Assembly (NCBI GenBank): GCA_950097015.1
Contig: CATNEN010000005.1
Span: 1,240,001-1,304,000, forward strand
Source: Macrostomum hystrix
Lineage: Eukaryota > Animalia > Platyhelminthes
DNA length: 64,000 bases
Reading direction: 5' to 3'
This document shows, piece after piece, positions 105 through 43,000 of this stretch; the first letter of the stretch is position 1; each line of letters starts with the position of its first letter. The notes under the pieces were generated by a model. It had not been told where the DNA came from, searched no databases, and worked only from the letters and a program-made list of their open reading frames with translations. The position numbers were made by a program, and so were the translations under genes.

Positions 105-3100
105 ACGATTTCGACTGCGGTAGCAGCTGCTCCAGTCTGGACGATCGTCTCCAGAAGATGCGTCCGATCAGCTGTTCACCGCAGTTGCGCTCGTTCGATC
201 GACACCGATTCGAGGCACACAACTGGCGCCTGCTGACCATGCGGGCCTATCGCCGGCTCCAGACCACTGTGGACGGGGTCCAGCGCCTTCTAGGCGAATA
301 CGCTAGCAATGCAGCTAGAGATTCAACCAGCATTGCTGCTAGCGGATGGATTACCAGGCCTGAGAACGCAGGGATCACGGCTAGCTTTGGATGCCACGCC
401 AAGCCAGTAAGGAAGAGTTGCAGGCCAAAGACCCAATCCGAGAGACGTCAGAGAGCTTTGACATGGGCGGGATGATAGATAATATCTGATTATGAAACAC
501 GGGAGGGATTATATACAAGCGAGATGAGACAGGGGAGAGATGAGACTAGGGACAGATGAGACACGGGAGAGGTGACACCTCTTCATCTCTCAAGAAAGAG
601 ATTAAATATGGGGGGAGATGAGATATGAGAGCTATTACATACAGGTGAGATAAAACCCAGGAGAGATGATTTGCAGGTCAGATGAGACATGGGAGGGATA
701 AGACAGGGGAGAGATGATATACGGGAGAGAGGAGACTCAAGAGACATGAGGCATGGTAGAAATGAGACATGGGAGGGATGAGAAAATTGTTAATATATAA
801 CACAGGAGACACCCAACAAGCATGAAGAAAGATAGCTCGTATGGGAGTGGCAGTAAAGAAGACTTCTAAGATAGGTGAGAAAAGTTTAAAGGGGCCAGAT
901 GGCTGGTTTCAGCAGCCTTATTCACGCAAAAGACAGAGCATCAAAGTCACAGTATGAAGTTATGAAATCACAATAAAATTTGTCTTGATCTTAGTTATAA
1001 TACCAGAACTAAAACAAAAAAAGCGTTCATCGCTCCGAATTATTGAAAGTAAATAAATGATTTGATATCGATTACATAAAAAAATTGCACACAACGTGAC
1101 GTCATTTTTTTCCAAATAAGTTTTTAATAATGAGTTTCATGTGATTTTGTAACTGTTAATGAAGGAATCGTCCTCTGACTTTCAACCACAGGTGCTAACA
1201 ATTTGTGGAGCACCCAACAGCGGTAAATCCACTCTAATCAACTGCCTACTGGGCTGTAGAGTTCTGCCCACCCGCTTTGGCCAGGACGACAAAGGCCTCA
1301 TTCGCCTAGTGTACTCCTCCAGATTCTTTGTCAGATATCGAGACCTTGAGCAGTCCGGCAGCTCTGGGGCGTCGTCTGATTTGGCCAAAATCATCCGCAA
1401 CTTCACTCATCGTAGAATGACAGAAGAGGAGCGTCAGGAGTGGATTTCGCTGAAGGACAACTGCTGTTTGGAGATCGGCGTCGACTGTCCGCTACTTCAG
1501 AGCGGCTTCTCCATCGTGGAGGTGCCCGAGTGCGTGCGCGAGGACTTCCTGCTATCCGTACTGAACCAGCAGGAGCATTCACTCTACCAGACTCTGGTGT
1601 TTGTGCTGGACGGCATGAACGGAATATCACAGATGGTGAGCAATCAGCAATCAGTGCTTTTGCTGTGCACAGGGAATGTCGAACCACACCCACCCTCAAA
1701 TACCCAAACTAATGCTGGAACCATGCATTTAACAGCTTGGGTGAATCGAAGCAATGTACAGTTGAGTGTCTTGCTAAAAGACACAATCGTTCAAATGGAG
1801 TCCGGAACTGAACCTTGCCTTTCAAATCGCCAGTCCAATGCCCTTTACCACGAGGCTACCAGCAATATATAATCTTTTTGTATTGACTTATGTTACACCC
1901 CTTTCTTATAAAAAGAAAAGTAACAATGTGACGTTTTAAAAATAACAGAAACAAGAACTTTCAAATATGACCGGTAAACTACAAAAAGCTGGACTTTGCT
2001 TAAGCTTCATATTCACGGCAGTTTGATTTTTTGCTCGTTTAGCTCATGAAACTAATAATACCAGGTTTTATCTGGTAAAATCGAAAAATTTATTGTATAT
2101 TTTCCCCTCTTCTAACGATTGGGCAGGTAGGGACTGTACGCTTCTTCCCAAGTGCATGAACTTCGACTTTTGATATTGTTGATCAGGCTTCTCAGCAGAT
2201 CTGAAGCAAGAGAGCCACTTCAGCGCTGCTCAGAGCCCTCTGAGACACTCCGAAGCATTTCATGCAGCCCTGGAACACTCGGTTGTGCGTGGCAGAGCGA
2301 GTGGTCGCTCCGATCTGCACCATGTTGCCAAAGTTCGCACACGATGTCACGGCCACTGAAGAGCCACTGCTGGCAAGAGTTCCGTTCACGTAGATCCAGA
2401 AGGCCGGTGTGTTTCTGTTGTACACTGCAGCGATGTGAGTCCAACCACTGGCAGTGTCAGTGGGTCCAGGCACTGTGAGCCGAGACACAGGGGATTCGAC
2501 TGTGAGCTTAATATCAGTGCTAGCAGGATGCAGCCAGAGTCGAGTAAAATGTCCATCTGGCATCGTCAGGCCTTCGAAAAGAGGCATGGCGCCTCGGGAT
2601 TGGTTGGACACCTGCACCCACACAGAAAACGTGAAGCTCGTGAGACACTCTGAAGCCAGCTGGTCGATGTTGAATCGCTCATTCACACCGAACTGACCAG
2701 TGAAGTTGACCGCACTGTCCGTGTACTGCATGGCCATGTTCTCCTGCAGGTCGAGATGGCCGCTGTTCGAGGCCACATTGCGGCTGCGAGTGGCGTTGCT
2801 CATGGGCCAGAAGGCGACGAGGCTGAGCTGACGCAGGACGCTCCACACCTCGCAGTCGGTGTCGTTCGAGAGTCGCACAGTTTGCACGCTGTCCGACACG
2901 TTGCAGACGCCTGTGCGGTAGCTCCAGCCGATGCAGAGACGGAGCTGAGAGCACAGGAAGGCGCACGAGCGAGCGCTTGAGGCCGTCAGCAGGTGTTGGG
3001 GAGTCTGAGCGACCACGCAGCCACCGACTGACACGTCTCGATGTACTTCGACCCTGCCTCCTTGTGTCAAAAGGGGCAGTAAAAGCGTTATGTACCAATG

Positions 3101-6100
3101 GAACATTTAGTAGAAGCCAAAGTTTTCTTGCAGAGCACTATGATTATTTTTGTGAATCAGAAGCCCGTATAACTGATACATTTTAGAAAGAAACTCATTA
3201 TTTTGCTTTTTTATAAACTTTCCCTTCCAGTCGAGGAGGGGATTGCGTTGAGTTTTTTTAATAAACAAGACCAGCTTCAATCTGCTTGGCAAGAACTTAT
3301 TTTTAGCTTTCTAGCTTTCTAGCATGTCAGGCTTGATTCGTGTCAGTTTGATAACAGCTCCAAAACTATTAACGACGTCCAGGACGTTTTAGCTAGAGTT
3401 TAAAAAAATGCAGCTCTAGTCACTCTTTATCCTGCTTTGTTTGAGTAATGCACGAATAGTGTTGGAGCTGGAATTTTTTCTAAAATGCTGTTTGGCTATT
3501 TGCTGTTTACATTGATGTTTGGTTGACTTACACGGCAAACCATGGATCAAATTCAGTGAGTTTGTCGCAATGTATCTATTCTCGTACCATGTCACGGTTA
3601 AAAGATAGCTTAATAAGCAATTTGCATAGTCGTTTTATGCGGCTGTAAATTACATTGTTTTTATAAAGAATATTTCTCGACAGGTAAGCTGTTAAATATG
3701 CTCGTGCAGCTCGAGCAATGAAAAAGTTTATTAGGTATGCGATCGTGCTTTTTATTTCAGTTAAAAAAACTCCGGAAAAAACAAAAGTGCAAAAGATGCG
3801 TTTTGCCACAAACTGAAACCATCTGTCGCTCAACAAAAAAGCGAAAAAATTCTAGGTTTTCGTTACAATCGCTTATCTATCTGAGAATATAGAATGGAAA
3901 TATAAATTACAACTAACCGGCCACACCCATCCCAATTAAATTTTCTACCCCTTTGACAGCTAGGAATGCCGAACCCCTGAATTACGTGGCCTGATTCGAA
4001 CTCCCGACTCATAAATGATACAAAAAACACTTTTTCTCAGGTGCGTGAGTTTCTGCTCCGACTGAAAAACCAGTGCATGAACCTCAGCATCCTGTACGTC
4101 ATCAATAAGATCGATTTCAACCCGGAGGCTTTGAAAAAGGACGGAGCAGAGCCGGGTTCCGATTCTGACGATGAGCTCGACAGTTGCGAGGAAGACGACG
4201 GGGACGAAGCTCTGCGCCGCCTTTTTCCGAAGGGTCGAGCACTTGAGGAGAACAACGCCAAGCGCGCTTTGAACATCCTGACAAAGACATTAGGAGTTCA
4301 AGGACTACATGATCTTCAGGACAGGGCTGTTCTCGTGTCGTTGCTTCGATGGAATACGCCGTTAAAGGAGGTCAGCACAGAGATTGTCGAGAGAAACCTG
4401 CTGTACAAGCAGCGCTACAAGGACCTAGAAGCGGAGCTGGATGGCATGCTGCGCGCCAGAGAGATCGGCGTGTTTCATCTGTCAGCCGAAATGCTGCGGA
4501 CTGCGTCAATGCGTTTGTATCGAACCTTCACCGCAGGCCACCGGCTGCTGCATCCGGAGGGTCAGCTGAACAACCAAGAGGCACTGAACCTGTTGACTCG
4601 GGAGACTAAGAAAATCTTTAGCGAAGTCTGGCAGTACATGAAAGACAAGCGCCGGTGCTTTCAGTTTACAGTCTTTGAGGTTCACCGCCGAGAAAGACAG
4701 GATATTATCGATTGGTGCGTTGATCAGTCGATGACAGACGATGGCTCCATCGATGGTGCCGACACAAGGGAGCGAACCTCGCAGTTGGTTCAAGACCTTG
4801 TTGTGCGGCGTCTCCAGAGTCGCTTTGAGGAGTTACTGCGGGCTCCTCTTCAGGTGAGCATGTCCATTGGCAGTTTTAAAAGTGAAAAAAACAATGCATT
4901 CGTTTTCGATCGCTCCATTTAACCAGGACATCCGTCAAAGCCTCCTAGAAAAATTAAGTGAACTTCAAGCACGAATCTGCAGCCTGAGCTACTGTCAGCA
5001 CACGGTGCAGATGCTCGGACAATCCGTTGCCGATAAGGCTTCGCACGGCATCAGCCAGCTGGCCCAACTGACCCTCACCGTCCAAATCCGACGAAGGCCG
5101 ACGCGCCTGTTAAGCGTTGTTCGGTTCTTCCGACTGGCTCGTCCAGCTACTGGCAAAGATTCCACTTCGACTGGACGCAATCTGGTGCGCTCCCTGGCCG
5201 AGTCTAGCTATGATTCCATCGAGGTTAGCTGGATGACGCAGAGACTGTTTCACGAAGCCGAGGACCGTCTGCGCCAGACGGAGGCAACGATAATGGGCAT
5301 TGTAACAAGCCGGCTGCAGCACAATAGCGGACTGCAGAAGCTACTCGCTAGGTTAGTTCTATGAAGATTATATTTGTGGGGAGCTACAATTTGTGCCCTC
5401 TGGCAAGAAACTTTATTCCGTAGTGCTTCAGTTACAGCTGCGAAATGGGTACTAGCATTAGCATGAGTTAGAAATTTTGGATGGTGTAGCGGTCTCCTCA
5501 GTCCATAGACTGAACAAGCTGTACACAGCCTTCGGAAGCGCCAGGCAATAGCTGCGGCTATGACACTTCTGGCCCAACTGGCTAAGGAGTAGCTGTAGGA
5601 AAATCCATCTACAAGACCCGAAATACCTATACACCCTGCGCATCTATTTTTCCACCGTACATGCCTAATCAATCGCCAGATCTGTACCAGAGGCTCTCCG
5701 TCTGTGGCAGGACGCGCAGATCTGTGTCGCTGCCGCCGACGGTCTGGCCAACGTCGCCAGACACGGACCACTGCACCTAGAGACAAATTATGAGCCAATG
5801 AGCTCTAGCGACGCAGGAGGTAAATTACGAGTAGAATCTGGCTGCATTGCAAGCTCACCCAATATTTCGAGCTAATTCAGCAATTCAGCACGGAAATCCA
5901 CCTGTTGTTAACAATTTTTCCATTCGATCCATTCATTCAGACGCTTCTCAGTTCAAACTGGGTCCACGCTATCGTTTAGCCGGGCCCTACGCAGGGTTCG
6001 CTGCTCACGACCTGGTGGCAACAATTACCAGTCTTTGGGACCATGGCAACCAGCCCGACGAAGGCTGCCTTAACTACGACGACGAGGCTAGTCTGGCCCG

Positions 6101-9100
6101 ATGGCGATCAGGTCTTGGCGGGCTGTTGAATCACCTGCTAATTGCTGACACGTCGACAAACCGAATCGGCGCAACTTCGAATCAGCATCGCTGGCGGTAC
6201 CTGGCCATGAGTCGATTATTAACCTTCAACGAAACTGGCCAGCTGTGCTCTCTCCACCAGCCCATCGGGCTGCCAATCGATCGCCTGCTGCCTGAATCAG
6301 TTAAACTCACTGATTTGCAGGTATTGCAGCTTCATTTTTCCTTTTAAAGCAGTTTTTGTCGCAGAGTTCATTAGCAGCACAAATGTTCTCAGTTTAACGA
6401 TGACTTTGTCAAAAGCTCTGAACGCTCTAACATTTCAGACGTGCGAACTCGTGGACGGAATGTGCGGTGCCTTTGCCCAACTGGCGGACTCCCTTCCCAC
6501 CTTCGCCTGGCAGTTGGACTTTGCCAAATTTAAGGTAATGTTTCACTAACATTTGTCGCATGGGTTTTCGATTCAAAGTGCTGTCTGTGCTATTTGCTCG
6601 TAACCGATCTGTCAACCGATGTACAATGTGTTTGATCCATTCAGTTCAGATAGAAAAATTAATAATGAAAATTATAATTTATTTCATCTGCCCTAATCAG
6701 GCCAGATGTGCAGCCGAAAGCAAAGCCGCAGCTATAGCAGAATATTTATTTCGCAACTTGAAAACCGAAATAAAGTCTCATCTATCCCTTGTCTTCTTCT
6801 TTGTCTCATCTCTCCCCATCTCATCTATCACAACTGTCTCATCTCTGCACTTTATAAATCCCCCAGCCTATTTTAAATTTTAAGGACTGAAATTTGACAG
6901 ATTTACTCCATCACAAACACAGGTAACGGTATCGCCCAGCAACAGTCGGGTATCTGTTGTCTACAGCCTACTGGATGATCCAATCGACATCACCTGCTCT
7001 GGCAGCCCTCAGTTTTCAACTCTGACATCATCTGCAGCTGCCCTCATTCGAGGCGGCCGGCATCACCAGCTACTGGACTGGGCCTTGGCCTTCCTCTTGA
7101 AGCCTTCAGTTGGCGCAAGCAGTCCGACTGCACCGGAAGGGAAGCAGGAGGACCTTAGGAACCTCCTCGTTGAATTGGGAAATGCTACGTCGGCAAAGGC
7201 GTTGGCGGAAAAACGAGAACGCCTAAAGGAGATGGCGTTGTGCAGAGGTCGCCGACTTGCGATGGCAGCTAGTGCGCTGTACCAACGCACCCAACAGGAC
7301 GATCTTATTCAGGTGAGATATTTATCAAAAACACAACAGAAGGGGGTGAGTGGCAGAGCGGTCTAACGCGTTCGCCTCTTGCACCGTGGTCCCTGAGCTC
7401 GATTACGCGGCGAGGCCACATTTATTTGGGGCGCAGCCGCGGAGAGAAGGCTTGGGGCTTGTAGTGAAATTTACGCCCTTGACGGCTAACCTCCAAGACG
7501 CGGTGAAGGGTACACTGTCTGGCGATTAGAAAGTCAGGGCATATGTGCGCACCTGTGGGAGCGTATACCTGCGTATGGTATCTGTATGCGTGTGTTTAGG
7601 AGTTTGCAAAACCTCGCTGACGCGGCTGGTATAAAAATAATGTGCGATTGCCCGTAAGCCCCTTCTGCAATTATTATTATTGTTATTTCTTTATAACCCA
7701 ATAGCAACTATTAATTATATTGTACTCCATTCAATGCAAAAGAATATTCTCCTCTAGTCATAAGAGAATCAGACAAGCGGTCACTCCGAAAAAAGCACAA
7801 TCTTTGTTCATGCCAACAGGAGCTACGACTGCTAGTCCGTCGTGAACTCTCGACCCTTCGTAGCGGCGTCTCCAAGGATCAAACTAGGTCGAGCACCTCC
7901 ACAACGTCAGGCTTGACTGTACCTGATGCTAGGCGAAGTCAACTAGGGCGATGGGTCCGATTCAATCGGCGAATGCGCGCCGTCAGAGAGCGAGCCCTGA
8001 CCTGGGCTGATTGGCTAGATGAGTCAGTTCCTAGCGTGGCTCGAGGCGATCAGTATCCGCCGCCGCCGGAGACGCTGTTACCACCTTCTCGCGTACTTTG
8101 TACTTCATTGCTTAGCGGAGTGGATGGTGCTAACTCTGGGTCTGCTGCGGTATCAACTTCTCTGGTACGACGTTTGTGCTATTGTCTAAAAATTACTAGC
8201 CTCCAATAGGTACTGCACAAGATAAGATCAAGGACCACTATTGTAAGAGATCTCAAACTTACGTCGCATACTCGTACAGAAGGTCTAACACCTTCAACTG
8301 AGAGAAATTGAGACAGTAAAGGTAAACCTAACTCAGTTGGGTTAAATGCACCTTTAGAAAAAAGGCCAGAGCCATTGTGCAGCACTTTCAAGGCTGTGTA
8401 CGGTGGTTGACTTCACGTATTGGGGCGCCGCAACAAGCTACATTTTCAGCTCAGCTACTCTGATATCCATTTTAAAGCTGGTTGGAACTAAAGCAACAGG
8501 AACTTAAGTATATTTATCAAGGACACAATTTTTTGTGCTAAAACAAAAAAGATGGCCAGTTTGAGCAAGTTAGCAAAAAGTGCTTCAAGCGAGAAATATG
8601 TATTTGAAGGGATTGAATCGATATAGTGTTGATGCGGGCAAACTAGGTACACAAGGTATGGCACTAACAATTCAGAATATAAAGGTGGCACAGCATTCAG
8701 CACAAGAGACCGACACCAATCTTTTATTTTACACAGCCAAAGGAAAGCAAATCACTGGTGTTGGTAGTCACTGCCTGCTCGCGTCGATTGCAATTCGCTG
8801 CAGTCAATCGACTGCTAAGACAGCGAGTGCTGCCACCAACTGACGAATTTGCCAATAACAGACAATGCCTGGGCGTAATCAAGCTGGACTACTCGGAAAG
8901 CCAGCGCATCGATTTGAATCGACGCGATCGACCTTACTATTTGCCATTGAGGGCGGCGGCTGGACCCGATGGTCGAGACGATGTCGACGTGGCCGAACAG
9001 GTCGCTCGTTTCATAGAATCGCTTCCCGATGACACAGCGACTGCCTGGACAGGTCTAGCCTCGAACTGGCTGAGCGTGCAGGTCGACAATCCCGTGCTGC

Positions 9101-12100
9101 GGACGGGATTCACACTGCTGGCACCGCCTGAGCAGCTAATTCGGCTGGGGCGGTACGAGCAGTTGCAGCTTGTCAATCCGACAGCGGTACTCTGTGTAAC
9201 CGAGGAGCCCCCCACTGTCAGCGTGAGTACAATTCCGAGCATTCAGTTGAAATAGGCAAATATGTCGAGAATGAGCCAGGGAGCATAGAACTACTGGTTT
9301 AAAATCTGTCCCAGTGGCCAAATTTTATTACCAGAAGATATACTCAGTGTATTTTTCTTCTGGGGTATTTCAAATTCCCACTGCCTACTTCACGACAGCT
9401 CCCAAACCGTTGACCGATTTTCATGAAATTCCCCTCTCTCAATCCAAATGTTCTGCCTTTTACGAAAAAATGTTTAAGGCATCTGAGTCAGCATCGTCGA
9501 GACATTCAGCAATTCTTGTCGAAGACCCTCTTGACAAGGACAACTTACATCGCTCTGTACCAACCCTCTATGGTGAATCCGTATTCGTTCGAATACGGAG
9601 TCTTAGAAAATGGGACAATTTACTATTTAATCAATCTAAAATAGACAACAATGGTAGCGACAATTATTATGAGGAAATTTCGTGATCGGAAAAAGTAAGC
9701 CTATATTTGTGGTTTTTGCCACCTGAAACGACGAGAATCGTTGAATATCTCGACGATCCCGATGTTTTGCGATCATGGAAAGTTTTAGCCCGTGTCCTGG
9801 ATTTCATGGCCATTAGTTGAATATTTTATTAGATACAAAAAATGCGGGTGTTTTAAATACCCATGTCGTCTTTCAGCTATTAAAAGTAGATACATTCGGA
9901 GTGGCACTGGCAGAAATATTTTGAACGTTAGGGGAGAAAACTTCTGCCAAAACTGTATTTTTAATACTTCAAATAAATAATCGAAACTTACACAGGAACT
10001 ACATCACCTGCTGTCCTTGCAAATGAATCTACCAAGTCTGCCTATACTAGCAATTCACTGCAAATCGAACGCAAGTCCAGTTTTCACGGATTCGGGCTCA
10101 CCGCTGCCGCTATCCAGTACACTGCCATCGACACCGCTTTCAGCAACACCCAGGCTTCGTAAACCCCGATATCGCCTGTCGCACTTCTCAATCTCGATTG
10201 ACTCAGAAGAAGATACAATCAGCCCTGGCTCTATCGTCAGCGAGACGCAGCTTCTACTGGACAAGCGACTGGACACCAGAAGGATTCGCCGACTTGTCTT
10301 GCCGGTATCATCAGTCGTTGGTGGCTTTGGAAACGACGAGGGCAGCGTCAGCGATGCAAGTGACACACTCAATGCAGACTGTTTTGACTATTCAGAGGAA
10401 GCAGATGATTCCAGCCCAGATATTCGTCTTGAAGACGCAGTGGCAGAACTATTGGAAATTGCCGATAAATCAGACTCGGAGAGGAGTCTACTCAGACTGG
10501 AGTCAATCACGTCGCGGCTACTGGAGTGCTTGGTTCGAAACTTACTATAAATTTTCCCTGAACTTAGAGATTCTAAAATCCTAGCTGAGACTCATAAACC
10601 GACACTAATCTTAACTATTACAGATTCAGCCAGCATGCAGTGAGTCGTCCGACTCACTGGCAGTTAGTGTAGACCGATTGAAGGCCCGGGTCGCAGCTGA
10701 GTTTGCTGAGGCGAGCGGTCGATTAGAGAACGAAATTAAAGCCAGTTTGAAGGAGCATCTGTCTGCGGAATTGGCCACAATATCTCCGCTAGTTGTGGAT
10801 GAATGCGGTAGAATACAACTGGACGATCAAAAGCATCAGCATCAGGCACCGACACAGCATCAGCAGCAGAGACGCTTGGGCCAGGTACCTTAAGACGTTT
10901 TGATTTTCGCTATGTTTACTCTTAAAAGGCTCAACACTATTCTTTCTAAAAGTTAGCTTCTTGTGTTTAAAAGCTTGATTGTCAGAGTAGTAACAGGTGA
11001 AGGTCAGGCCTTGGCATCAAGTGGTTTTTCATAGGATTCTTAGCGATATGCTTGCACTGCCATCCGTCTTCCAATTTAATAACAATTTCAACCCGAACCA
11101 GTCTCATTTCAGTCCTGGTAATACAGAAACAAAGTCCCGTCGGGATGCTGTGTGTCGGTCTCAAATCGAGGCATGTGTGCTCAGCTCCTGCTCTGTCGTG
11201 TTCCAACGCGCCTGCAGTGTGCTTGCTGATACCTGCTCTCGTCGTTTAGCCGAACGGCTTCTGCCCAGCAGCGGAGGCGCGCCTGCGGTACTTCTTGGTG
11301 CCCTGTCACACGAGCGGCTGCATCGTGTGCTGAGTTTGTACATCAGCGGGGAGGATTTTGATGTCGCTCCACTGCGTTGGCAGGAAGTGAAACCCGGAGC
11401 TGACACATGTCTTCAACTGAGCATTGGAAATGCAAGTCTTAAGGAAACAAACTCTATAGTGCCAAGATTTTTCGTAATCATTTCGTAGTCTAAAATTGAG
11501 AGCTCAACACCCTCTTCGTATTTTTATTAGGACTGGAAGACACTGACTGCCACGGAGACCCTAACCTCTGTGGATGTTCCTTCAAGTGCTAAACACATTC
11601 TGGAGCAACTTAGCAACCGACTCCAAGCTGCCAAGATGGCTGTTCTAGATCTGATTAACGACAAGCTACAATTTTGTCGCCAACTGCAGAAATTGCTGGC
11701 CAAATCGGCTCCCGATGCGACTCGCCTTTGGCAGGATGCGCAGCTGTGCGCTGCGGCGGCTGACGCGCTGTCGTCTGTAGCGGAACATGGGGCGCTGAAG
11801 CTATCAGACGATGGAGAGCAGCTTGGCGAAGACCAGCTTGGCCCGCGGTACCGTCTTGACGCATCGTACGCAGGATTCAATGGCCGAAACGATTTTGCTT
11901 GCGTCACAGTTACCTGTCTTTGGGATTGCGGCAACGGGGCAGACGCGTGTGGAGGGTCGGACGTGGACGAGGCGGCGATCAACCGTTGGCGCTCTGGCCT
12001 GGGCGGCTTGTTGAACCACCGGCTGCTCAAAAGTTGCTTTTGCGTCGGAAATCTGGCCGTGACGAGACTGTTGACATTCAACGATCGGGCCAGGCTATGC

Positions 12101-13265
12101 GCCATTCACACTCCATTGGGTAAATCACTGGCCAATGTATTGACCGATTCCAAGAATCCGCTCACTGATGTCCGGGCCTGCGAGATTGTCGATGGACTAT
12201 GTGGCGCGTTCGCTCAGCTCACAGAGCTTCTGCCCGTATACACATGGAGCTTCGATCATTCAAATCTCAGTGTAAGAGCAGATCGCAAGCTGTGACCGTG
12301 TACGCTTAGAATTATAATAATTGTTCCAGGAGGGTTGCGGGCAATGGCACATCATCTATTGACACTTGATCTGCAGCCAGCGAGGAGGCAATGCTGCCCA
12401 TTTCGCTGACTCATGAGCACACAAGTATACAGATACTTTACACAGGAACTCGCTCACACAGGTGTACATCTGCCCTGAATTTCTCATCGTCCTGCAGTGT
12501 GTACTTTCACTGTGACTTAGAGGTTAGCCCTCAAGGGCGTCGATAGCACGACAAGCCCCACAAACCTTTTCTCCGCGGCTGCGCCCCAAATGAATTTGGC
12601 CTCGCCTCGACCCTTAATATTATATTATTATGAGGACGGTATGCGCTCTCATATTATATGCAGGCATTAGACTCAATGCCAGCAAGATGCAATTCTACAC
12701 ATTCCATTGACTCCTGAGCACACATGCACACTGATACCGTATGCAGACACAGGGACAGAGGTTGGTGCATCTGCCTTTCATCATCAAGCATAGTGTACAC
12801 TACACTACACATTCCGCTTAACTCCAACAGGTCAGGGTCGATTGCACTAAGTCGCCCACAATGCATCTTCTGTTCGATCTCCTGCATCAGCCAGCGATTA
12901 ACTTTAAGGCGCTCGCCAGTAAGCAAAAACGCACGATGCTGAAACACCAGGAGGCCAGCTCATTGCACTGCAACCAGCAACACCTGGCCCTTCTGGATCT
13001 CAGCCTACTGGTGCTCATGACGCCTAGCTACATGACTGATTGCCAACAGCTTCTGGGCATGGACGACGTAAAGACTAGGCGAGCTCGACTGAAGAATCTC
13101 GCTAAAGCTGATATTAACAAGAAGGCCGTTGAATCTAGCTTCCTATTGAAGCGGCTGTTGAGCTTCTACCAGGAAAAACCCAACGAAGTGTGCGCTTCCA
13201 TTGCGGCAGCGGTGCGGAGGGAACTGTCCTACCGGCGGAGTTGCGGCGACGGGTCATCAAAGTGA
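105..13265 (+). CDS. Large multi-exon protein, 5' partial: two tandem copies of a dynamin-like GTPase / helical region / kinase-like domain module (DSTYK-like architecture)
   Basis: Phase-compatible GT-AG exons at about 105-406, 1192-1635, 4041-4853, 4927-5351, 5680-5819, 5941-6320, 6439-6534, 6923-7312, 7820-8164, 8737-9222, 9996-10532, 10624-10884, 10997-11386, 11531-12271 and 12831-13265 (stop). Module 1 has the P-loop GAPNSGKS, LINCLLGCRVLP and a G4-like NKID. Internal homology is seen directly: RLWQDAQ, LGPRYRL, RWRSGLGGLLNH, RLLTFN, CE(L/I)VDG(M/L)CGAF and VRRELS each occur twice. The donors at 8164, 10532 and 11386 are less certain. Confidence 0.75.
490..800 (-). repeat. Degenerate TCTCATCTCTCCC(C/G)TG-family minisatellite (also at about 6770-6850, 31370-31540, 32090-32530 and 63536-64000)
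   Basis: Recurring GAGATGAGAC/GTCTCATCTC units. Confidence 0.85.
2192..3106 (-). CDS. Intronless secreted protein with signal peptide, PAN/apple-like domain and LamG/concanavalin-A-like domain, nested antisense in intron 1636-4040
   Basis: 304-aa ATG-initiated ORF with a hydrophobic N-terminus (MFHWYITLLLPLL). The spacing CAFLCSQLRLCIGWSYRTGVC is PAN-like. The motifs FWPM, SFTFSVWV, WTHIAAVY, IYVNG and RALSSAEV are typical of Laminin_G_3. Confidence 0.8.
   Translation of the reverse strand: MFHWYITLLLPLLTQGGRVEVHRDVSVGGCVVAQTPQHLLTASSARSCAFLCSQLRLCIGWSYRTGVCNVSDSVQTVRLSNDTDCEVWSVLRQLSLVAFWPMSNATRSRNVASNSGHLDLQENMAMQYTDSAVNFTGQFGVNERFNIDQLASECLTSFTFSVWVQVSNQSRGAMPLFEGLTMPDGHFTRLWLHPASTDIKLTVESPVSRLTVPGPTDTASGWTHIAAVYNRNTPAFWIYVNGTLASSGSSVAVTSCANFGNMVQIGATTRSATHNRVFQGCMKCFGVSQRALSSAEVALLLQIC
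7345..7685 (+). mobile_element. SINE family A, diverged
   Basis: GTGGCAGAGCGG head, GGGGCGCAGCCGCGGAGAGAAGG body and ATTATT tail. Confidence 0.8.
12312..12800 (-). mobile_element. SINE family A copy plus an adjacent degenerate partial copy
   Basis: Reverse complement of the family core (GCAGCCAGCGAGGAGGC, CTCCGCGGCTGCGCCCC) at 12312-12615, with a second remnant at about 12650-12800. Confidence 0.75.
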
Positions 13266-14646: not shown

Positions 14647-16737
14647 ATGAAGGAGGCATCATTGGCGGCCAACTGCCTCACTAGCAACCCGCAAATTCAG
14701 CTGAGTACCAATGGCATAGATCATCCCAACAATGGAACATCGCGACTAGCTGCTCTGGTAGTGAACCTGCCAGTGGCCAGATGGGGCGAAGTCCTTGATG
14801 CTGTTCGAGTGAGTCGACTGCAAGATTTCACAACAGTAAGAACTCTTGAACAAGGCCGTGCTGAAAATACAAGCTGCTTGATTTTCAGAAGTCAAACGCC
14901 TCCATTGAGAAAATAGACTTTCGTGCCTCGTCGAAGCAGTGCACCAATGGCTTCAATGGTGATGACTGCGCAGGCATGCTGGTTCAAATCCGCCTGCCGG
15001 AGGATGCTGAAAAGTGCCTGAAGTCGGCTTCGCAGCTTTTGAATGAGAGTGGCAATGAAGTACGTCTGCTGATTGAAGGTGAAGGTGCTGATTGCAATCG
15101 GGTGGCAGGTACGTACCCCACTTTTCCCACGAGTTGGTTATACATTAGCTTCAAATGATATGCAAATAATATGCCCTTTGCGCATTTTTTATGCCCAATT
15201 CAAGTTACAGATGACCAATGGTTTCCAAAGACGTTACCAGACTTGGATATAGTTTCCAATCGTGTTCTTCTTCTGGACCAAATGAATGACGTGGATCATC
15301 CCGTAAGTTTCGTACTAGAAAAAACCTTCATATGGCGTATAACGATGTGACATTGCTAATAACTTCATCCGCCAGAGCATGCAAGATGAGCACTACAAAG
15401 AGCGAAGGAAGATGTTTGCTCAGCTGGCCTTTGAGTACAAGCACGACCAGCCCATTCCGCTGGTTGAGTACACAGACCAGGAGAATGCAACTTGGTCCAC
15501 CGTGTTCAATCGCTTGAGTGATCTCTATGACCAGCACGCGTGCAAGGAGTTTTTGGAGAACTTCAAACTGCTAAGGGAGATCGGGCTGTACAGGTAATGT
15601 GCTCAAAACACGAGCTTGCATTATCAAAAAGTATATTAAACTATTAAAAAGGAAGTTTAACATAAGCAACTATATTGTGCCGGACAGTAAAAATGTAAAC
15701 AAAAACCAGAAGCACTCCCGTACAGGAGTGACCGCATCCCGCAGCTGCGCGACGTGTCCGACTTTGTCAAGCGCCGCACGGGCTTCACACTGCGTCCGGT
15801 GGCGGGCTACCTGTCTGCTAGGGACTTTCTGTCCGCACTGGCTCTGAGAGTCTTCTGCTGCACTCAGTACATCAGGCACTGGGAGAGACCGTTCTACACT
15901 CCGGAGCCGTGAGTACCAACCGATTGACCCCGACAGCATTCACTCGATTAAACAAATCGATGACCACCTCACTGTTTTCTGTTTCAGGGACTGTTGTCAC
16001 GAGCTTCTTGGTCATGTACCAATGCTGGCGGATCCGACATTTGCTCACTTCTCTCAGGAGATCGGCTTGGCTTCTCTCGGCGCATCGGAGGAAGACGTCA
16101 AGAAGCTCGCTACGGTATGACTTTAGTGTCTTGGACTATTATTTATCGGTTTCGTCTTTCTTTAGTTTAGAGATACTGTTAATTTTAGTGCTATTTCTTT
16201 ACTGTCGAGTTCGGTCTTTGCAAGGAAGCTGAGAAGTTAAAAGTCTATGGTGCAGGCTTGTTGTCCTGCGTCGACGAGCTAGTGGTGAGTGGTCGTTCGT
16301 TGTGGGCAAGTTGCCTTTATTTTAATCAGTATCTGAGTATAGAAATAATATTTCTACGTTGCAGCATTCGGTCAGTGGAAAGTCTAACGTAGCTGAATTC
16401 GAACCTGAAGAGGTCGTCAAGCAGGAGTGTCGGATAACGACTTTTCAGGATGGCTACTTCTTCACCAGCAGTTTCGCCGATGCGGTGTCTAAGATCAGGT
16501 AGTCACAATGGCCAATATTTTGCAGTCTCCCCTAAATGATTTAGCGATTTCATTTGTTTCAGAAAGTTCTCTCAATCAGTGAGGCGCAGCCAGCATCTGA
16601 TCTACAATCCGTACACCCAGTCTGTGGAGCCGATCACGGACATTGCGGCTGTGTGCCGTTTCTTTGAACGAATCAGCTCGGATCTGGATGTCGGACAGCA
16701 GATGCTGAGTGGTCTCGGGCGTTACGTGTCGACCTGA
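14647..16737 (+). CDS. TPH: Tryptophan-hydroxylase-type aromatic amino acid hydroxylase, copy 1 (9 exons)
   Basis: Exons 14647-14808, 14889-15108, 15211-15302, 15376-15593, 15726-15908, 15988-16114, 16189-16284, 16365-16498 and 16563-16737. Motifs: [34 protein letters not shown], the iron ligands HELLGH and TVEFG, CYFF (TPH-type F rather than PAH/TH W), QECRITTFQ and YNPYT. Confidence 0.9.
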
Positions 16738-30375: not shown

Positions 30376-31990
30376 ATGAATGCAAGGCAAATGCAGCTGC
30401 TAATAGTTTGTCTGGCCATCGGCTCAGTCGTCACCGCTGCCGCCGCAGACATTCCACTCTGGGAGGTGAACACCGTCAGCTGGACAGGCGATCGTGTTCG
30501 ACAGTTTCAGCTAACATCCAGCAGCCAAACTGTGCTGCAGTGTGCCGCCGTTGCAGCCAAGTACATGCGGGCTGACAATCTGCTAGTCTTCATTAGAGGA
30601 ACTGGGACGCAAGAGTCCCAGTGCTTTCTCGGTGAGCTTGCCGTCATCCATAGCTCAACTCCTTGACTGAATTTTCTTTCCATTGTTTGAGACGCCTGTA
30701 TAGAACTCGCTATGGTTAGAACTCATTTGGAATAGCGGAGCTGTGCCACTCACTGTACATCTAGGCCAACAATTCTATGTTAAAGATTGAATGTATCTAA
30801 ATCTAAATCTATCTGTTTTGTATGCGGCTTGCATGCCGCCTTCAGTGAAAGCGCGCGTGGTGCGTTCTGATTGGCGGGGGGTTTTACTGTCTGCCACAAA
30901 CCGGTCTAGGCCGGCGTGGGAGGTTATTAGTGTTCGTGACTGACGATATATATCTTTATTTATTTATTAGCGTGCATATCTAGACCAGATTCAGTCTAAA
31001 AAGACATCATCAAAACTAATTCGCAGCTAAGAAAACCAGATGTCTGAGGACCGACCGAGGCAGTCCATTGACTCCGTTGGACACGAAGTCTTTGTTAGTA
31101 AGTAATGAATTGTTGATTGTCTATTTTTTCTGTGTGATAATTTCAGCTATAGAGATGCCTATTTCCGACTCAATCAAGGTGTTTGCCACGCCACTAGAGA
31201 CTTGTTGGACCACAATTCAGCACCGAGTAGACAATACAACCGACTTCTACCGCAACTGGAGCCACTATACCGCTGGATTCGGCCAGGAGCCCAGTCGCAA
31301 CTTTTGGATCGGTTTGTAACCAGTTTGAGTCCATGGACATGGGCCCATCCATTCTCAAATACCCCAGGGTTGTCACATCTCATCTCTCATCTCTCCCCTA
31401 TCTCATTTCTCCCATGTCTCATCTCTCCCATGTCTCATCTCTCCCATGTCTCATCTCTTCCCTGTCTCATCTCTTACCCGTCTCATCTATCCCAGTATCA
31501 ACTCTTCACCTGTCTCACCTGTCGCACCTGTCGCACCTCACTTGGTTTGATTGAATTCGCAGGACTAACTACTCTGCACAAGTTAGCCTGGCCAGTCGCA
31601 AGGACACTACTCATCCGCATGAAAACGTGGGATAACACTGAGTATTGGGCCGAGTATTCTAATTTTCTTGTTGACTCGGAGACTCAGAAATTTCGTCTGA
31701 CGGTATTCGGTTTCCGAAGTTCGTCTTCAACAGTTGGCGACTCGATGATAGGGCACAATGGAAAATGCTTCAGCACGCTTGATGAGGACAATGATAGCTA
31801 TCTGCAGGGTAGCTGCGCTCAGATATACAAAGGAGCCTGGTGGTACAATGCTTGTCACACCACCAATCCCAACGGTCTGTACTACACCCCGCCAACTGCT
31901 ACCAGTGTTCCTGGCGCCAAGGGCATTACTTGGTACTATCACTTTACTTATAGCTACTCAATGAAAGAGTTTGAAATGCTGATTTGCTAG
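30376..31990 (+). CDS. Secreted fibrinogen-related domain protein (FReD), 3 exons
   Basis: Exons 30376-30631, 31147-31311 and 31563-31990, all joined in phase 1. It has a signal peptide plus TIQHRVD, FYRNWSHY..GFG, FWIG, HNGKCFST.D.DND, CAQIYKGAWWYNACH..NPNG and ITWY. Confidence 0.9.
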
Positions 31991-36547: not shown

Positions 36548-39500
36548 CAACAACAACAACAACAAATAACAAAATATGCTGTCAGGTGAAAAAAGCAGTG
36601 TCACAGTGCACCCTTCAGAGCCTGGGCTCAAACAAAGGCCACACTGATGGCAGTGTCCGGGGCCCCAGCATCGGCCAGCAGGCAGTTGACAAAATGCGAA
36701 GTTCGGGCCTGGCCACGCCAGTAGGGTGCCTGCAGCGTTAGCAGCAGCACCTGCACCGGCTGCGGGCAGTAGGACTCGGCACGGATGATGTGGCCAGCAA
36801 GCTGGAGTTGCCTTGGATGGGCCAGGCCGGTGCGGCGATAGAGTGCAGCAGGCCAGTATGTGCCGCGTTGACTTGCTGTTCGAGCAAATCCATCAGCATC
36901 CACGTCTCAGTGTTGTACAACAGGATGGTCTCGACCACCGCCTGGAACAGCGCCGCCCTCTGGCGATCAGGTAGGGCCTCGGACTGCAGGACTGCCCTCA
37001 CAGAACGAAAGGCAGCCTAAGCGAGCCCGTGGCGACGCCGCTGATCTTCGCGGACGTCAGGTACCAGACCGCCGAAGTAGACGAACTGCTGACAGCTCAG
37101 AAGCTCTGTTACCTGCCCGTCAGCGCTTCGGCAGAAAATTGCGGCCTCGATGTCGCCCGGCACGCAGAACACAACGGTCTTCTTCGAGTTGACCAACAGG
37201 CCGACGCTCGCTGCGGCGCTAACCAGCTTATCCAGCTGGCGCTGGTCGCCCTCTATGGTCGAGCACAGCAGGGCGAGGTCAACGGCGTAGCCAAGCACGC
37301 TGAGCCGTTTCTCCGGTTGACGTTGACCCACGCGTCGCCGCAGTAGGAAGCCGTCTTCGTCGATAGGAAGAGCAGTTCGTAGCACCCAGTCAAGCACCAG
37401 GACGAACAGAAACGGCGCTAGAGTGTCCCCCTGGAGCACCCCTGAGGATGTCTCGAAGAGGTCCGACAGGCCGTCCGGCGTCACAGCTGCTCTCGTAGCA
37501 CAGTACAACGCCATGATGGCGGAGATGAGCTGTTCTGGCACATGGTACGCGCGGAGCACATGTGGAAGCGCAGCCCTCGCAACCGAGTCGAAAGCCTTCA
37601 TGAAGTCAATGAAGACAACGATCAGGTCCAACTGGCGCGTGCGCGCCTCCTCGATGATTCGGCGAAGAGCTAGGATCTGCGTCACTGTGCCACGGTGGGG
37701 CCGCAACCCGTTCTGCTCAGGTCGCAGGTAGGGATCCAGCACGGGTTGTAACCGCGATAGCAGCATCCGGTTGAACAACTTCGCAGCACAGGATTGCTGG
37801 CAGATACCTCGGTGCTCTTCTAGCCGCGTAGTGCCCGGCTTCTTTGGAATGGATATGATGTGCGCCATGGTCCACTCAGTGGGTGCCACCTCACCGGAGA
37901 GCACGCGGTTCATCACACGGGCGACCTCACTGGCCACAGTGGATGCGCAGCGCCTTGATGGGCACCTCGTCCGGACCCAGCGCCTTGCTGCCCGGTGTCT
38001 TCTGGGCGAGCATTACGACTCCAGCCATGGTGACTGGTGCAACGTTAAAACTGTCCTCTGACGGCAACGGCGTCTCTGGCGGCAGCGTCAGGATGTTGGC
38101 AGCGGGGGTGTCGGTGCGTTGACTATGGCGGCGAAGAACTCGCGCAGCTCGTTCCTGCGCTCATCCGCAGTGTCGCCTGCCAGATTCAGTTGGATGCACC
38201 GCTTCCGCCCTGTCAAAGCATTAATGGCGGACCAGGCCACGCGCCCTCTGGCGTCGGGCCCAGCGGCAGAGACAGCCCTGACAACTTCATCAACTGCGGC
38301 CTGCTGCCGCTGCAGATAGACAGTCGCCAGAGCCTCCTCCGCCTCGCGAGTAGGCCGCCTGCTCAGACGGAGCTTTTCCAGATATTCCCTCGCTTGTTGA
38401 ATCGCGGGGTCGTCCTGCCAGACCGCATGCCCACGCTGGGCCGGTCGCATCAACGGGACCGCTTGTTACGCGGCGGCTCGTACTGCGGCGCTCACATCCG
38501 CGTACTCGGCACCTCCACGCTTGCCGCCGAGCGTAGTGATGAAGGCGCTAGCGAAGTGGCAGTGCGTTCCGGCGTCTTTGAGAGCGCGGTAGTAGCGCCG
38601 CGGTGGCCGCTTTGGCGGACGGTAGAGCGGATCGCGTAGCTCGAGGTCGCAGATAAGTAGCCGATGATCGGATCGCAGAGCCAGCGGCGTAATGGTGCGG
38701 CAGTTGACAGCGCGGCGGCGCTCACGGGAGCGCAGATGCACGTGGTCAATCAGTGCTAGTCTCCGTGTAGCGAACCGGCTACGCGCGTTCCGCCGCCTCC
38801 GTTTGCAGCCCACGAAAGTCGCGAGCCTGCTTGGTGGCTTGCGGAAGCGGGTGTTGGCCGACACCATATCCTGCGTCTCCAGGAAGTCCTCCAGCGCCTG
38901 GGTGTTGCCGTTCTCGCGGTGAGTCACAAACAGCGACCGCTCGGACCTACGCGGAACCGCGTTTAGGTCTCCGAGTACGACCACCGTGTCGCGCTGCGCA
39001 GTCTCCTCCACGCGCAGAGAGCTGCTCGAAGAAGTCCTGAGCCTCATCTGGGCGGGTAGCAGGTGGCGCGTACATGCAGAACAAGCGAGCATTCCGGCCG
39101 CGAAGCCGGACGTCTTACCTGAAGCATCCGGGGGGACAGGGAAGAGCAGCGATAGCTCTGCTGCAGTCTCGGGCCGATCAGTGCTCCAACTCCTCCACGG
39201 CCTCGTTGATCCGCTGAGGTGTACCAGAGTGTCCAACCGGAGCCCAGGTCCTTACAGTCAGGTCCAGGCTCGGCTCTGATAGACACCTGAAGTGCGATGA
39301 CATTACAGCTGAGGTCGAGCGCTAGCTTCGCCAGCAACCCTCTCCGCCAGGCGGCCTTAGAGTTCGGCAGTTCAGCGTCCCGACTCGGAGTGTGCCCTGT
39401 GGTACAGCTGGGGCTCGGTAGTGGTGAGCCTCATGGTCGCCCGGAAGACCCAGATGGACTCGCATGGCAGCAGCTCGGCGCGCGGCGACACGTTGCCGGC

Positions 39501-40003: not shown

Positions 40004-43000
40004 ATGGATACTCTGCTAGCTGCTAATCCAAAAAGTCGTCGCTACGAAAAGATCGACTACTTTGACGAGGGACAATATGCCCTGGTTTACAAGGCTCGCG
40101 ACACTCAGACTGGCCAATTAGTGGCCATCAAGAAAGTGAAATCTGGCACTAGAGAGGACATTGCCGACGGTGTTAATCGCACAGCATTGAGAGAGATTAA
40201 ACTGTTACGCGAATTATTGCACGACAATGTAATTCGCCTGCTAGATGCATTTGGCGACGATGGCAATGTTAATCTGGTGTTTGAAATCATGCACACGGAT
40301 CTAGAGAAGCTAGTACACGATCAGTCTGTTGTGCTGGCTCCTAGTCACATAAAAAACCTGCTGCTTCAGTGCCTTAGAGGATTGGACTATCTGCATCAGA
40401 ATTTTGTGCTGCATCGAGATATTAAGAGTAATAACATCTTCGTTAGTGCCACTGGTGAGGTGTGTACCTGGAATTTATTTTAGAATTTATTTTATACCAG
40501 ACGTGAGTTCGATTCTTAGCCCAAAATAGAAACTTTGTGTTTAATATTCGCGAGACGCCAAATACTTTAGTGATTCAGTTTTTGGGTGTTGGAATTTTTA
40601 GGTGGATTTGGTGTATCTGAAGCTTCAAGGATTGTGGGAGATTTTAGGTTTTTGAGGCTTCTGGGATTGTGGGAGATTTCGGGATTTCTGAAGCTTGAAG
40701 GATTGTGGATGATTTCGGGATTTCTGAAGCTCCATGGATTGTGGGAGATTTCGAGATTTCTGAAGCTTCTAGGATTGTGGATGATTTCGGGATTTCTGAA
40801 GCTCCATGGATTGTGGGAGATTTCGAGATTTCTGAAGCTTCTAGGATTGTGGGAGATTTAGGGATTTCTGAGGCTTCTGGGATTGTGGGAGATTTCGGGA
40901 TTTCTGAGGCTTCTGGGATTGTGGGAGATTTCGGGATTTCTGAAGCTTCTGGGATTGAGGAGATTTCAGGATTTTTGAAGCTTCAAGGATTGTGGATGAT
41001 TTCAGGATTTCTGAAGCTTCTGGGATTGAGGGAGATTTAGGAATCTCTGAGGCTTCAATGATGATAGGAGATTTCAGGATTTCTAAAGCTTTTGGGATTT
41101 AGGGAGATTTCGGGATTTTTGAAGCTTCAAGGATGGTGGGAGATTTCAGGATTTCTAAAGCTTCTGGGATTGAGGGAGATTTCGTAATTTCTGAAGCTTC
41201 TGGGATTGAAGGAGATTTCGGGATTTCTGAAGCTTCTGGGATTGTGGGAGATTTCGGTATTTCTGAAGCTTCTGGGATTTTGGGAGATTTCGGGATTTTC
41301 GAAGATTCAGGGACTTATTAAAATGTTTTTTCGAACTAACGTCCCCTCCCAATCCTTGCAAAAAGGTGAAACTTGGCGATTTCGGTCTGGCTCGCATGTA
41401 CGGCAGCCCGAATCGGCCATTAACCAATCAGGTTGTAACGCGCTGGTATCGCTGCCCAGAGCTGCTATTGGGCGCTAAGATCTACGGCCCCGGTGTAGAC
41501 ATGTGGGCTGCCGGCTGCGTTTTCGCCGAGCTGTTGCGCAGAACCGCTCTTTTCCCTGGCGAATCCGATCTGATGCAACTGTCCAAGATCTACCAGCTGT
41601 TGGGCACGCCTAAATTGGACGATTGGCCAGAGGTGGCGCAGTTAGAAAACTTTATTCAATTCAACGACTGCCAACCGGTGCCACTGCATAATATATTCAC
41701 GGCCGCCACCGATGATCTGTTGGATCTTATGCAGGGCTTGCTTAGACTCAATCCGGCTAAGAGGTCTGTCTGGGTCTGCCTGTTTACTGCAGCAAATTCT
41801 TTGTGGCTTCTTGACGGGATAAATGTAGCTAGCTAGGTTAAAAGTTCAATGACTAGATATTGGCCTAAGATATTGAAGAGTAAGCAAAGAACTTTTTCGA
41901 ATTACTTCAAAATTAAGAAAATGGTTAAGAGGCCGACCTACATTTTTTTAGAATGACCTAAAGGTTTAGAGGAGGACCTAAGAGTTTAGAAGAGGACCTT
42001 CAAGTTAAGATAAGGACCTAAAAGTTTAGGGCGGATAGCTCAGTCAGTAAGGTGTCGGACTCTGGATCAGATGGTTCTGGGTTCGACTCCCGACCTAGTC
42101 TAGAACTATTCGTGCAGCCTTTGGCAAGCTGCTTTGCCTTGATGTGCACACAGTCTAGTCAGCTGCAAATGAGTACCGACATTTCGTCGGGCAATAATAA
42201 TTCCGGCTGGCGTGGAATAAAGCAGTTCTGTGCGGCAATTCTGTGGGGTTTGGATGCTGCCGATATGTTTGGAAAAATAAATTCCATTGCTGACACGCGG
42301 CTGTCAACCGGTGTCCGAGAGAGCCGGGGAGTATAATAGGTGTGCAGTCCCCACCTGCTAGTGTACATGACATTAAGTTACATTCATTAACTTAAGTTAA
42401 GTTCATTAAGTGACACAACACCTGCACTGGCCCTTGGGTCTAGTGTCAATTATTATTATTATAAAATTTTAGATGAGGACCTAAAAGTTTATAGGATGAC
42501 CTAAAAGTTTATAGGATGACCTAAAAGTTTATAGGATGACCTAAAAGTTTATAGGATGACCTAAAATTTTAGAGGATGACCTAAAAGTTTAGAGGATGAC
42601 CTAAAAGTTTATAGGATGACCTAAAAGTTTAGAGGATGACCTAAAAGTTTAGAGGATGACCTAAAAGTTTAGAGAATGACCTAAAAGTTTATAGGATGAC
42701 CTAAAAGTTTAGAGGATGACCTTAAAGTTTAGAGCATGACCTAAAAGTTTAGAGCGTGACCTAAAACATCGAAGAAAGGTCTAGAAATGAAAAAAATTAC
42801 CTAAAATATGTAGGGTATAATATAATTTCTAGTTTTTCAAAACCACGTCCTAAAATTCGCTTGGCGATCAAAAGTTTGTAGCAAAAAATAGACTTTGAAT
42901 TTGAAACCCAGTTCATATAATGCAATAAGAAAATGCCGTTGTTGAAGCCTCACTCTAAAAGCCTTGCACCCATCCCTGACCTACCCTCGCAGGCTCACAG

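Follow-up and report, generated by a model that had tools for sequence, protein, structure and literature searches.

The window analysed here, a stretch of 64,000 nucleotides from the flatworm Macrostomum hystrix (GenBank contig CATNEN010000005.1, positions 1,240,001 to 1,304,000), carries on its forward strand a gene that encodes two diverged copies of one module in a single chain, each consisting of a dynamin-like GTPase domain, a helical stalk and a kinase-like domain (Table 1). Its 15 exons (105-13265) have canonical acceptors and compatible phases, contain no internal stop and give together 6,125 nt, or about 2,040 amino acids (aa), in agreement with a first-pass annotation of the letters, which had proposed one reading frame over both modules and whose motifs were all located where it had placed them. 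The start codon probably lies to the left of the window, since exon 1 begins at a phase-1 acceptor and the genes of both paralogues in Macrostomum lignano have a phase-1 intron directly behind a short first coding exon. The splices of exons 1-7 rest on GT-AG signals, phase and homology, and the comparison with RNA covered positions 6900-12890. Exon 13 was bounded by RNA and by its M. lignano orthologue, which give 11102 and 11431 in place of the rejected boundaries 10997 and 11473; its GC donor, which makes the following intron GC-AG, was deduced from contig break points together with the junction in the orthologue. Homology searches with the spliced model were run exon by exon, and the fold work used the M. 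lignano proteins P0002 and P0003 as proxies, with the window exons as separate alignment rows.

Transcripts confirmed that the fusion is real and that both halves belong to one expressed gene. Contigs from four public runs (among them X4 and X5 of study P2 and X1 of study P1) were compared with the region 6900-12890 (about 6 kb) and, being spliced, behave as RNA. The GT-AG joint 8164-8737, which fuses the modules, was found in three runs (X4, X5 and X1) from two studies, the joint 12271-12831 was present in the same runs, and a 2,279-nt contig of X4 runs through exons 8-12 with zero differences. A spliced transcript therefore crosses 7820-9222, as the first-pass annotation had anticipated, and transcripts stopping at the TAG at 8209, the outcome that it had set against the fusion, were absent from the run contigs: contig depth is zero across the intron bins 8300-8699, and in 8100-8299 it equals the expectation for the spliced form only. 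Besides, no polyadenylation signal (AATAAA or ATTAAA) occurs in the fusing intron 8165-8736. Contigs lose rare forms and show no transcript starts or ends, and a minor short isoform may exist.

Two introns of module 2 showed a different behavior. The intron 10885-11101 is partly retained (X4 contig 17, depth 4.1 versus 9.2 for the spliced joint), which leads immediately to a TAA at 10891-10893. The GC-AG intron 11432-11530 (99 nt) carries an in-frame TAG at 11486-11488, contigs break at both of its ends, bin depths fit partial retention, and its retention would remove the second kinase-like domain. The contigs of X1 and X2 are 99-100% identical to the window and were dropped as evidence from another species. 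Run X2 differs at the exonic positions 10121, 11201 and 11257 (two synonymous changes and one Phe to Leu), and probably derives from a different strain or a very near relative.

Table 1. Exons of the fused gene and two features of its introns, in window positions.
Feature	Position	Strand	Description
Exon 1 in window	105..406	+	internal coding, phase-1 acceptor; module-1 N-terminal neck helix; z 6.4 to P0002 N-helix
Exon 2	1192..1635	+	module-1 G domain, first part; Pfam Dynamin_N E 2.5e-6
Nested single-exon open reading frame in intron 2	2192..3106	-	304 aa; outside the fused protein
Exon 3	4041..4853	+	G4, acidic loop, module-1 helical stalk begins; 30% to P0002 354-561, E 4e-13; intron position common to paralogue genes
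Exon 4	4927..5351	+	module-1 stalk; basic amphipathic paddle-like helix 5101-5142
Exon 5	5680..5819	+	helix between stalk and kinase-like domain 1; 52% to exon 14
Exon 6	5941..6320	+	kinase-like domain 1 N-lobe and hinge; 46% to exon 14, E 2e-27
Exon 7	6439..6534	+	domain 1 alphaE and catalytic-loop position AWQLDFAKFK 6505-6534
Exon 8	6923..7312	+	domain 1 C-lobe-like part; RNA contigs 16, 20; z 4.8 to exon 15
Exon 9	7820..8164	+	module-1 end, VRRELS 7835-7852; about 100-aa Ser/Thr/Pro-rich linker; RNA contigs 16, 20
Fusing GT-AG intron	8165..8736	+	excises in-frame TAG 8207-8209; joint in X4, X5, X1
Exon 10	8737..9222	+	module-2 pseudo-G domain; 28% to exon 2; E 5e-8 to P0002 188-315; RNA
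Exon 11	9996..10532	+	G4 position CKSN 10059-10070, then strongly diverged region; RNA
Exon 12	10624..10884	+	diverged module-2 stalk; RNA
Exon 13	11102..11431	+	module-2 stalk without paddle-like helix; GC donor; 53% to P0003, same junction
Exon 14	11531..12271	+	last stalk helix; kinase-like domain 2 from 11834; 69% to P0003, 30% to P0002; RNA
Exon 15	12831..13265	+	domain 2 C-lobe-like, VRRELS 13212-13229, TGA stop; 59% to P0003

The expressed gene contains a real internal duplication that is old and has been under selection. The modules are similar to a degree well beyond chance in the exon pairs 2 and 10 (z 11.8), 5 and 14 (z 23), 6 and 14 (z 42), 7 and 14 (z 20) and 8 and 15 (z 4.8), with exons 4-7 scoring z 7.5 to 42 against exon 14, and each half can be aligned along P0002, a single-module protein of M. 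lignano. The G4 position lies 63 nt into its exon in both modules (NKID in exon 3, CKSN in exon 11), and two intron positions, one just before the G4 strand and the other just after the catalytic-loop position, are common to both modules and the genes of the paralogues. The VRRELS end, which the first-pass annotation had listed among the shared features, is indeed present in both modules, but taken alone this match is not significant (z 1.7). Beyond its first 28 residues, exon 3 has no detectable similarity to exons 11-12; exon 11 aligns in the same ungapped register with three homologues, each match being weak (z 1.8-3.0), and exon 9 as the source of the N-terminal helix of module 2 was discarded as not significant (z 1-2).

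Over aligned codons, the two C-terminal domains share 52-62% identity, whereas their fourfold sites are saturated (17 of 55 match). This combination points to a duplication of old date in which both copies have been under purifying selection; the same saturation led to the rejection of an assembly duplicate and of recent gene conversion between the kinase-like domains. Moreover, the halves are closer to each other in this domain (46-52%) than to P0002 and P0011 (19-37%), which fits an internal duplication, and the M. lignano proteins P0001 and P0003, 53-69% identical to exons 13-15, are nearer to module 2 than to module 1, which places the duplication before the split of the two Macrostomum species. 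Altogether, the exon-wise homology, the saturated fourfold sites and the module-2 orthologue in M. lignano bear out the duplication read from the letters.

The N-terminal part of the family has a mitofusin/BDLP-type dynamin fold, as judged on the paralogue P0002. Exon 2 scores above the Pfam Dynamin_N cut-off, a profile match to BDLP was obtained (E 1.8e-4), and the AlphaFold model of P0002, confident over the G domain and moderate over the stalk, is nearest to mitofusins, BDLP, Fzo1 and IniA (Foldseek E 5e-11, a value for the paralogue and not for the window protein). Against MFN1, the model gave a VIA Z of 20.7 and a root-mean-square deviation of 3.8 over 247 residues, within a mitofusin and BDLP range of Z 17-22. 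Together with the exon homology, these matches agree with the earlier proposal of a dynamin-like GTPase and a helical region in both halves.

Module 1 keeps G1 (GAPNSGKST, 1207-1233) and G4 (NKID, 4104-4115), but the alignment shows no G2 threonine at the expected position and EVPE (1519-1530) instead of DxPG at the G3 position. The G2 threonine and the G3 aspartate and glycine bind magnesium and the gamma-phosphate. Because G2 and G3 are non-canonical, the term intact, which the first-pass annotation had used for this GTPase, is too strong and holds for G1 and G4; the domain may bind nucleotide and is a doubtful hydrolase. The G3 motif is also degenerate in the single-module paralogues (EIPG in P0002, EVPS in P0011). 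Module 2 has TACSRRLQ (8770-8793) at G1, APPE at G3 and CKSN at G4, and no canonical motif at any of these three positions, so that the loss of G1 and G4 had been read correctly. No transmembrane segment was detected in any exon (best 19-residue hydropathy 1.52). A basic, aromatic amphipathic stalk helix (moment 0.69) occurs in module 1, P0002 and P0011 and is absent from module 2 and its orthologue P0003; it is a candidate paddle-like, membrane-docking helix.

A kinase fold is probable for the C-terminal domains, with moderate support from their sequences. Kinase profiles were built from fetched loci with a CDK-like kinase encoded in the window (40004-41836) as seed, and profile-profile alignment with hhalign gave a score of 26.4 (E 0.003, probability 10%) and matched the hinge, alphaD, alphaE and the catalytic loop in register. 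When P0002 served as the reference, E was 0.024 and none of 60 shuffles equalled the score, the overall range being E 0.003-0.03. In its extended form, the kinase alignment stays collinear between the Gly-loop and alphaE; the kinase clan is indicated by the ESM features of exon 14, and a mollusc Dynamin_N+Pkinase cluster had the top TM-score by query among the Atlas rows for the P0002 model, at only 0.29. At the beta3 (VAIK) position, domain 1 has ATITS and domain 2 VTVT, neither with a lysine, and the aspartate of the HRD position is absent from both (WQL in domain 1; WSF in domain 2, within TWSFDHSNLS, 12242-12271). Domain 1 also lacks the catalytic-loop asparagine and the DFG aspartate; a DFG-like aspartate is left in module 2 alone (DLL), located by eye and with the alignment referenced to P0002. 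If the kinase fold holds, both domains would be pseudokinases, since the beta3 lysine and the HRD aspartate are absent; the earlier proposal of a pseudokinase at the end of each half is supported as probable.

Relatives of the gene were confined to M. lignano. Among 1.84 billion representatives, exon 14 retrieved M. lignano proteins only (68% and 30% identity), and further searches, including an exhaustive one, with exon 14, P0002 or the alignment as queries returned the same species only and no DSTYK sequence; a full-length double-module protein was absent from the databases searched. At least two single-module GTPase-pseudokinase genes are present in M. lignano, those of P0002 (L001) and P0011 (L002, of which P0012 is a variant), both uncharacterised and with a degenerate G3. 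These genes, Mlig003289 (P0002/P0005) and Mlig014929 (P0011), are homologous to the fused gene along the whole module (about 26-37%) and share with it the two intron positions, the degenerate G3 and the dead kinase-like end, whereas each encodes a single module (about 1,080 aa) that has retained G1, G4 and the paddle-like helix. The UniRef name 'PI3K/PI4K domain' given to P0001 had no Pfam support.

Each module alone fits the layout of DSTYK, a long N-terminal region followed by a kinase, and both DSTYK and the mollusc Dynamin_N+Pkinase proteins (Atlas row 9) have the same order of GTPase-like, helical and kinase-like parts and a similar module size. This layout suggests a single-module ancestor of a DSTYK-like lineage, the label being a lead. 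Short stretches of human DSTYK may also resemble the stalk and the pre-kinase helix, which is a further lead. The dynamin-like N-terminus of DSTYK, which the first-pass annotation had treated as established, was not found in the searchable literature (here and below, a body that leaves most subscription journals outside), nor was any report of the GTPase-pseudokinase family in Macrostomum. DSTYK is described with two non-catalytic regions and a kinase, is located on late endosomes and lysosomes and causes their fusion when overexpressed (PMC6981171). Unlike the fused gene, it has only one module, whose kinase is active (PMC11933320), while here two modules are joined in frame and the catalytic residues are absent from both.

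Most bacterial dynamin-like proteins act as unequal pairs, and some of these are fused. Campylobacter DLP1 and DLP2 pair via a flexible linker, and in Bacillus DynA the pair is formed by head-to-tail fusion (PMC6104087). As in the fused gene, Bacillus subtilis DynA has two dynamin-like units head-to-tail in one chain and a second unit without paddle, D1 binding the membrane (10.1101/363689); unlike it, DynA is bacterial, has no kinase-like domains and needs both of its GTPase sites, which are functional. In the flatworm gene, G1 and G4 are missing from module 2, the G2 and G3 of module 1 are non-canonical, and the fusion is independent and arose by duplication; its asymmetry exceeds that of DynA because module 2 has no canonical nucleotide-binding motifs. 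Campylobacter jejuni DLP1/DLP2 and mitofusin 1/2 share the GTPase fold class, the unequal partners and the flexible linker (PMC6104087), but they are separate genes, both P-loops are required, and the mitofusins have transmembrane segments. In addition, mouse tandem IRG proteins such as Irgb2-b1 also consist of two adjacent GTPase units spliced in one frame (PMC3810784), but they belong to the IRG family, are recent duplicates and carry no pseudokinase domains. The claim that the architecture resembles no described protein is thus narrowed by the DynA and tandem IRG precedents and survives for the module and its combination, since neither a fused pair of mitofusin/BDLP type in animals nor a GTPase-pseudokinase module was found in the searchable literature.

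Our preferred reading, to which we give a probability of about 0.5, is that the gene encodes a scaffold that binds nucleotide, docks on membranes and presents two pseudokinase surfaces for partners. The gene would have arisen when a single-module gene (mitofusin/BDLP-type GTPase, helical stalk and pseudokinase) was duplicated in tandem and fused long ago, and its protein would be a covalently tethered asymmetric heterodimer whose halves may pair within the chain. Module 1 would bind guanine nucleotide via G1 and G4 and membrane via the paddle-like helix, with poor or no hydrolysis, and module 2 would bind neither nucleotide nor membrane and serve as an internal partner or a spacer. Docking surfaces, for example for kinase-active paralogues, could be provided by the two dead kinase-like domains, and on endomembranes the protein would be a scaffold for membrane tethering or signalling, not an enzyme.

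Several observations weigh against this scaffold. Every step past the sequence and the transcript is inferred, P0001 and P0003 are partial gene models, and the fused form is known here from the window locus. With the C-terminal domains, no kinase match was obtained by Pfam, a PDB profile search or an hmmsearch with a profile of 12 kinases, one of 60 column shuffles equalled the hhalign score of 26.4 with one reference row, and the AlphaFold models are unusable (predicted local distance difference test about 35), which makes fold searches with them meaningless. The apparent partial retention of the two module-2 introns would truncate a share of the products. Moreover, both GTPase sites are needed in DynA and in the Campylobacter pair (PMC6104087), and therefore their mechanism cannot work unchanged in a pair that has one dead site.

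The same requirement bears on the model of the first-pass annotation, in which module 1 is a working GTPase despite its odd G2 and G3 and the pseudo-G domain of module 2 acts as its intramolecular cap or stimulator. It is consistent with the G1 lysine and serine and the NKxD of G4, which are intact in module 1, with the activation of dynamin-like GTPases by G-domain dimerisation (PMC6104087) and with the length and core that the module-2 G domain keeps (z 11.8). However, module 1 lacks the G2 threonine and the G3 aspartate or glycine, and one dead P-loop abolishes turnover in known heterotypic pairs (PMC6104087); since the known pairs need both sites and module 1 is without canonical G2 and G3, we favor the scaffold and regard an active/dead catalytic pair as doubtful. 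It is also unlikely that the tandem is simply tolerated, with independent halves that double avidity or act as a decoy, kinase-like domains that alone matter and the N-terminal half of module 2 as a decaying spacer. Such an arrangement would suit the kinase-like domains, in which the halves are most alike, the lack of detectable similarity between exons 11-12 and exon 3 past its first 28 residues, the long linker of low complexity and the precedent of Irgb2-b1, a spliced tandem by which parasite kinases are blocked (PMC3810784); yet exon 13 is still 53% identical to its M. lignano orthologue, and the spacing of the G4 position and the stalk length were kept (266 aa in exons 11 and 12 versus 271 aa in exon 3).

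It is very improbable that the locus consists of two tandem genes joined now and then by read-through splicing, or that it is an assembly artefact. An in-frame TAG does lie 45 nt beyond the donor, contig depth in X5 is greater on module 2 (10.6 versus 6.6), the contigs are blind to rare forms and to transcript ends, and the M. lignano module-2 models are stand-alone fragments. Nonetheless, those fragments begin without a methionine at the exon-13 position, which marks them as partial models, depth in X4 is flat over the junction, no contig depth runs toward the TAG, the spliced form alone was seen in both studies, and the fusing intron offers no poly(A) signal; a mis-assembled recent copy is excluded by the saturated synonymous sites.

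The scaffold may be carried further, tentatively, to a conserved, genus-wide animal counterpart of the bacterial fused dynamin pairs. It would be a pseudoenzyme of four domains, with two mitofusin-like units, one binding nucleotide and the other free of it, that pair in-chain, and two pseudokinases that couple membrane tethering to active DSTYK-like kinases. If so, the uncharacterised N-terminal region of DSTYK would be mitofusin-like and act as a dimer, and a true DSTYK link would suggest a mechanism for the fusion of late endosomes and lysosomes that DSTYK is reported to promote (PMC6981171), an activity for which the searchable literature points to non-catalytic regions only. The importance of the gene is limited by its range, so far Macrostomum only, but a natural fusion fixes the stoichiometry of its partners and reveals which of their functions can be lost, here nucleotide binding, the paddle and kinase catalysis.

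Other features of the window were also recorded. The open reading frame nested in intron 2 has a hydrophobic N-terminus, a weak PAN domain and a LamG/concanavalin domain (Laminin_G_3 E 1.8e-17), and its product looks like a secreted lectin-like protein. Intronic repeats of high copy number at 7340-7560, 9360-9800 and 12350-12790, where contig depths reach hundreds to thousands, are probably similar to short interspersed elements or transposons, and the segments 7340-7560 and 12540-12620 resemble related copies in opposite orientation. Exons of an aromatic amino acid hydroxylase (TPH-like; 14647-16200, forward strand) start 1.4 kb past the stop of the fused gene, and the forward strand also carries an exon with a fibrinogen-related C-terminal domain (31202-31990) and the protein kinase exons at 40004-41836, which are CDK7-like. 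On the reverse strand, a reverse transcriptase/endonuclease retroelement (37017-39236) and a mariner-like transposase (61261-62411) are present in pieces.

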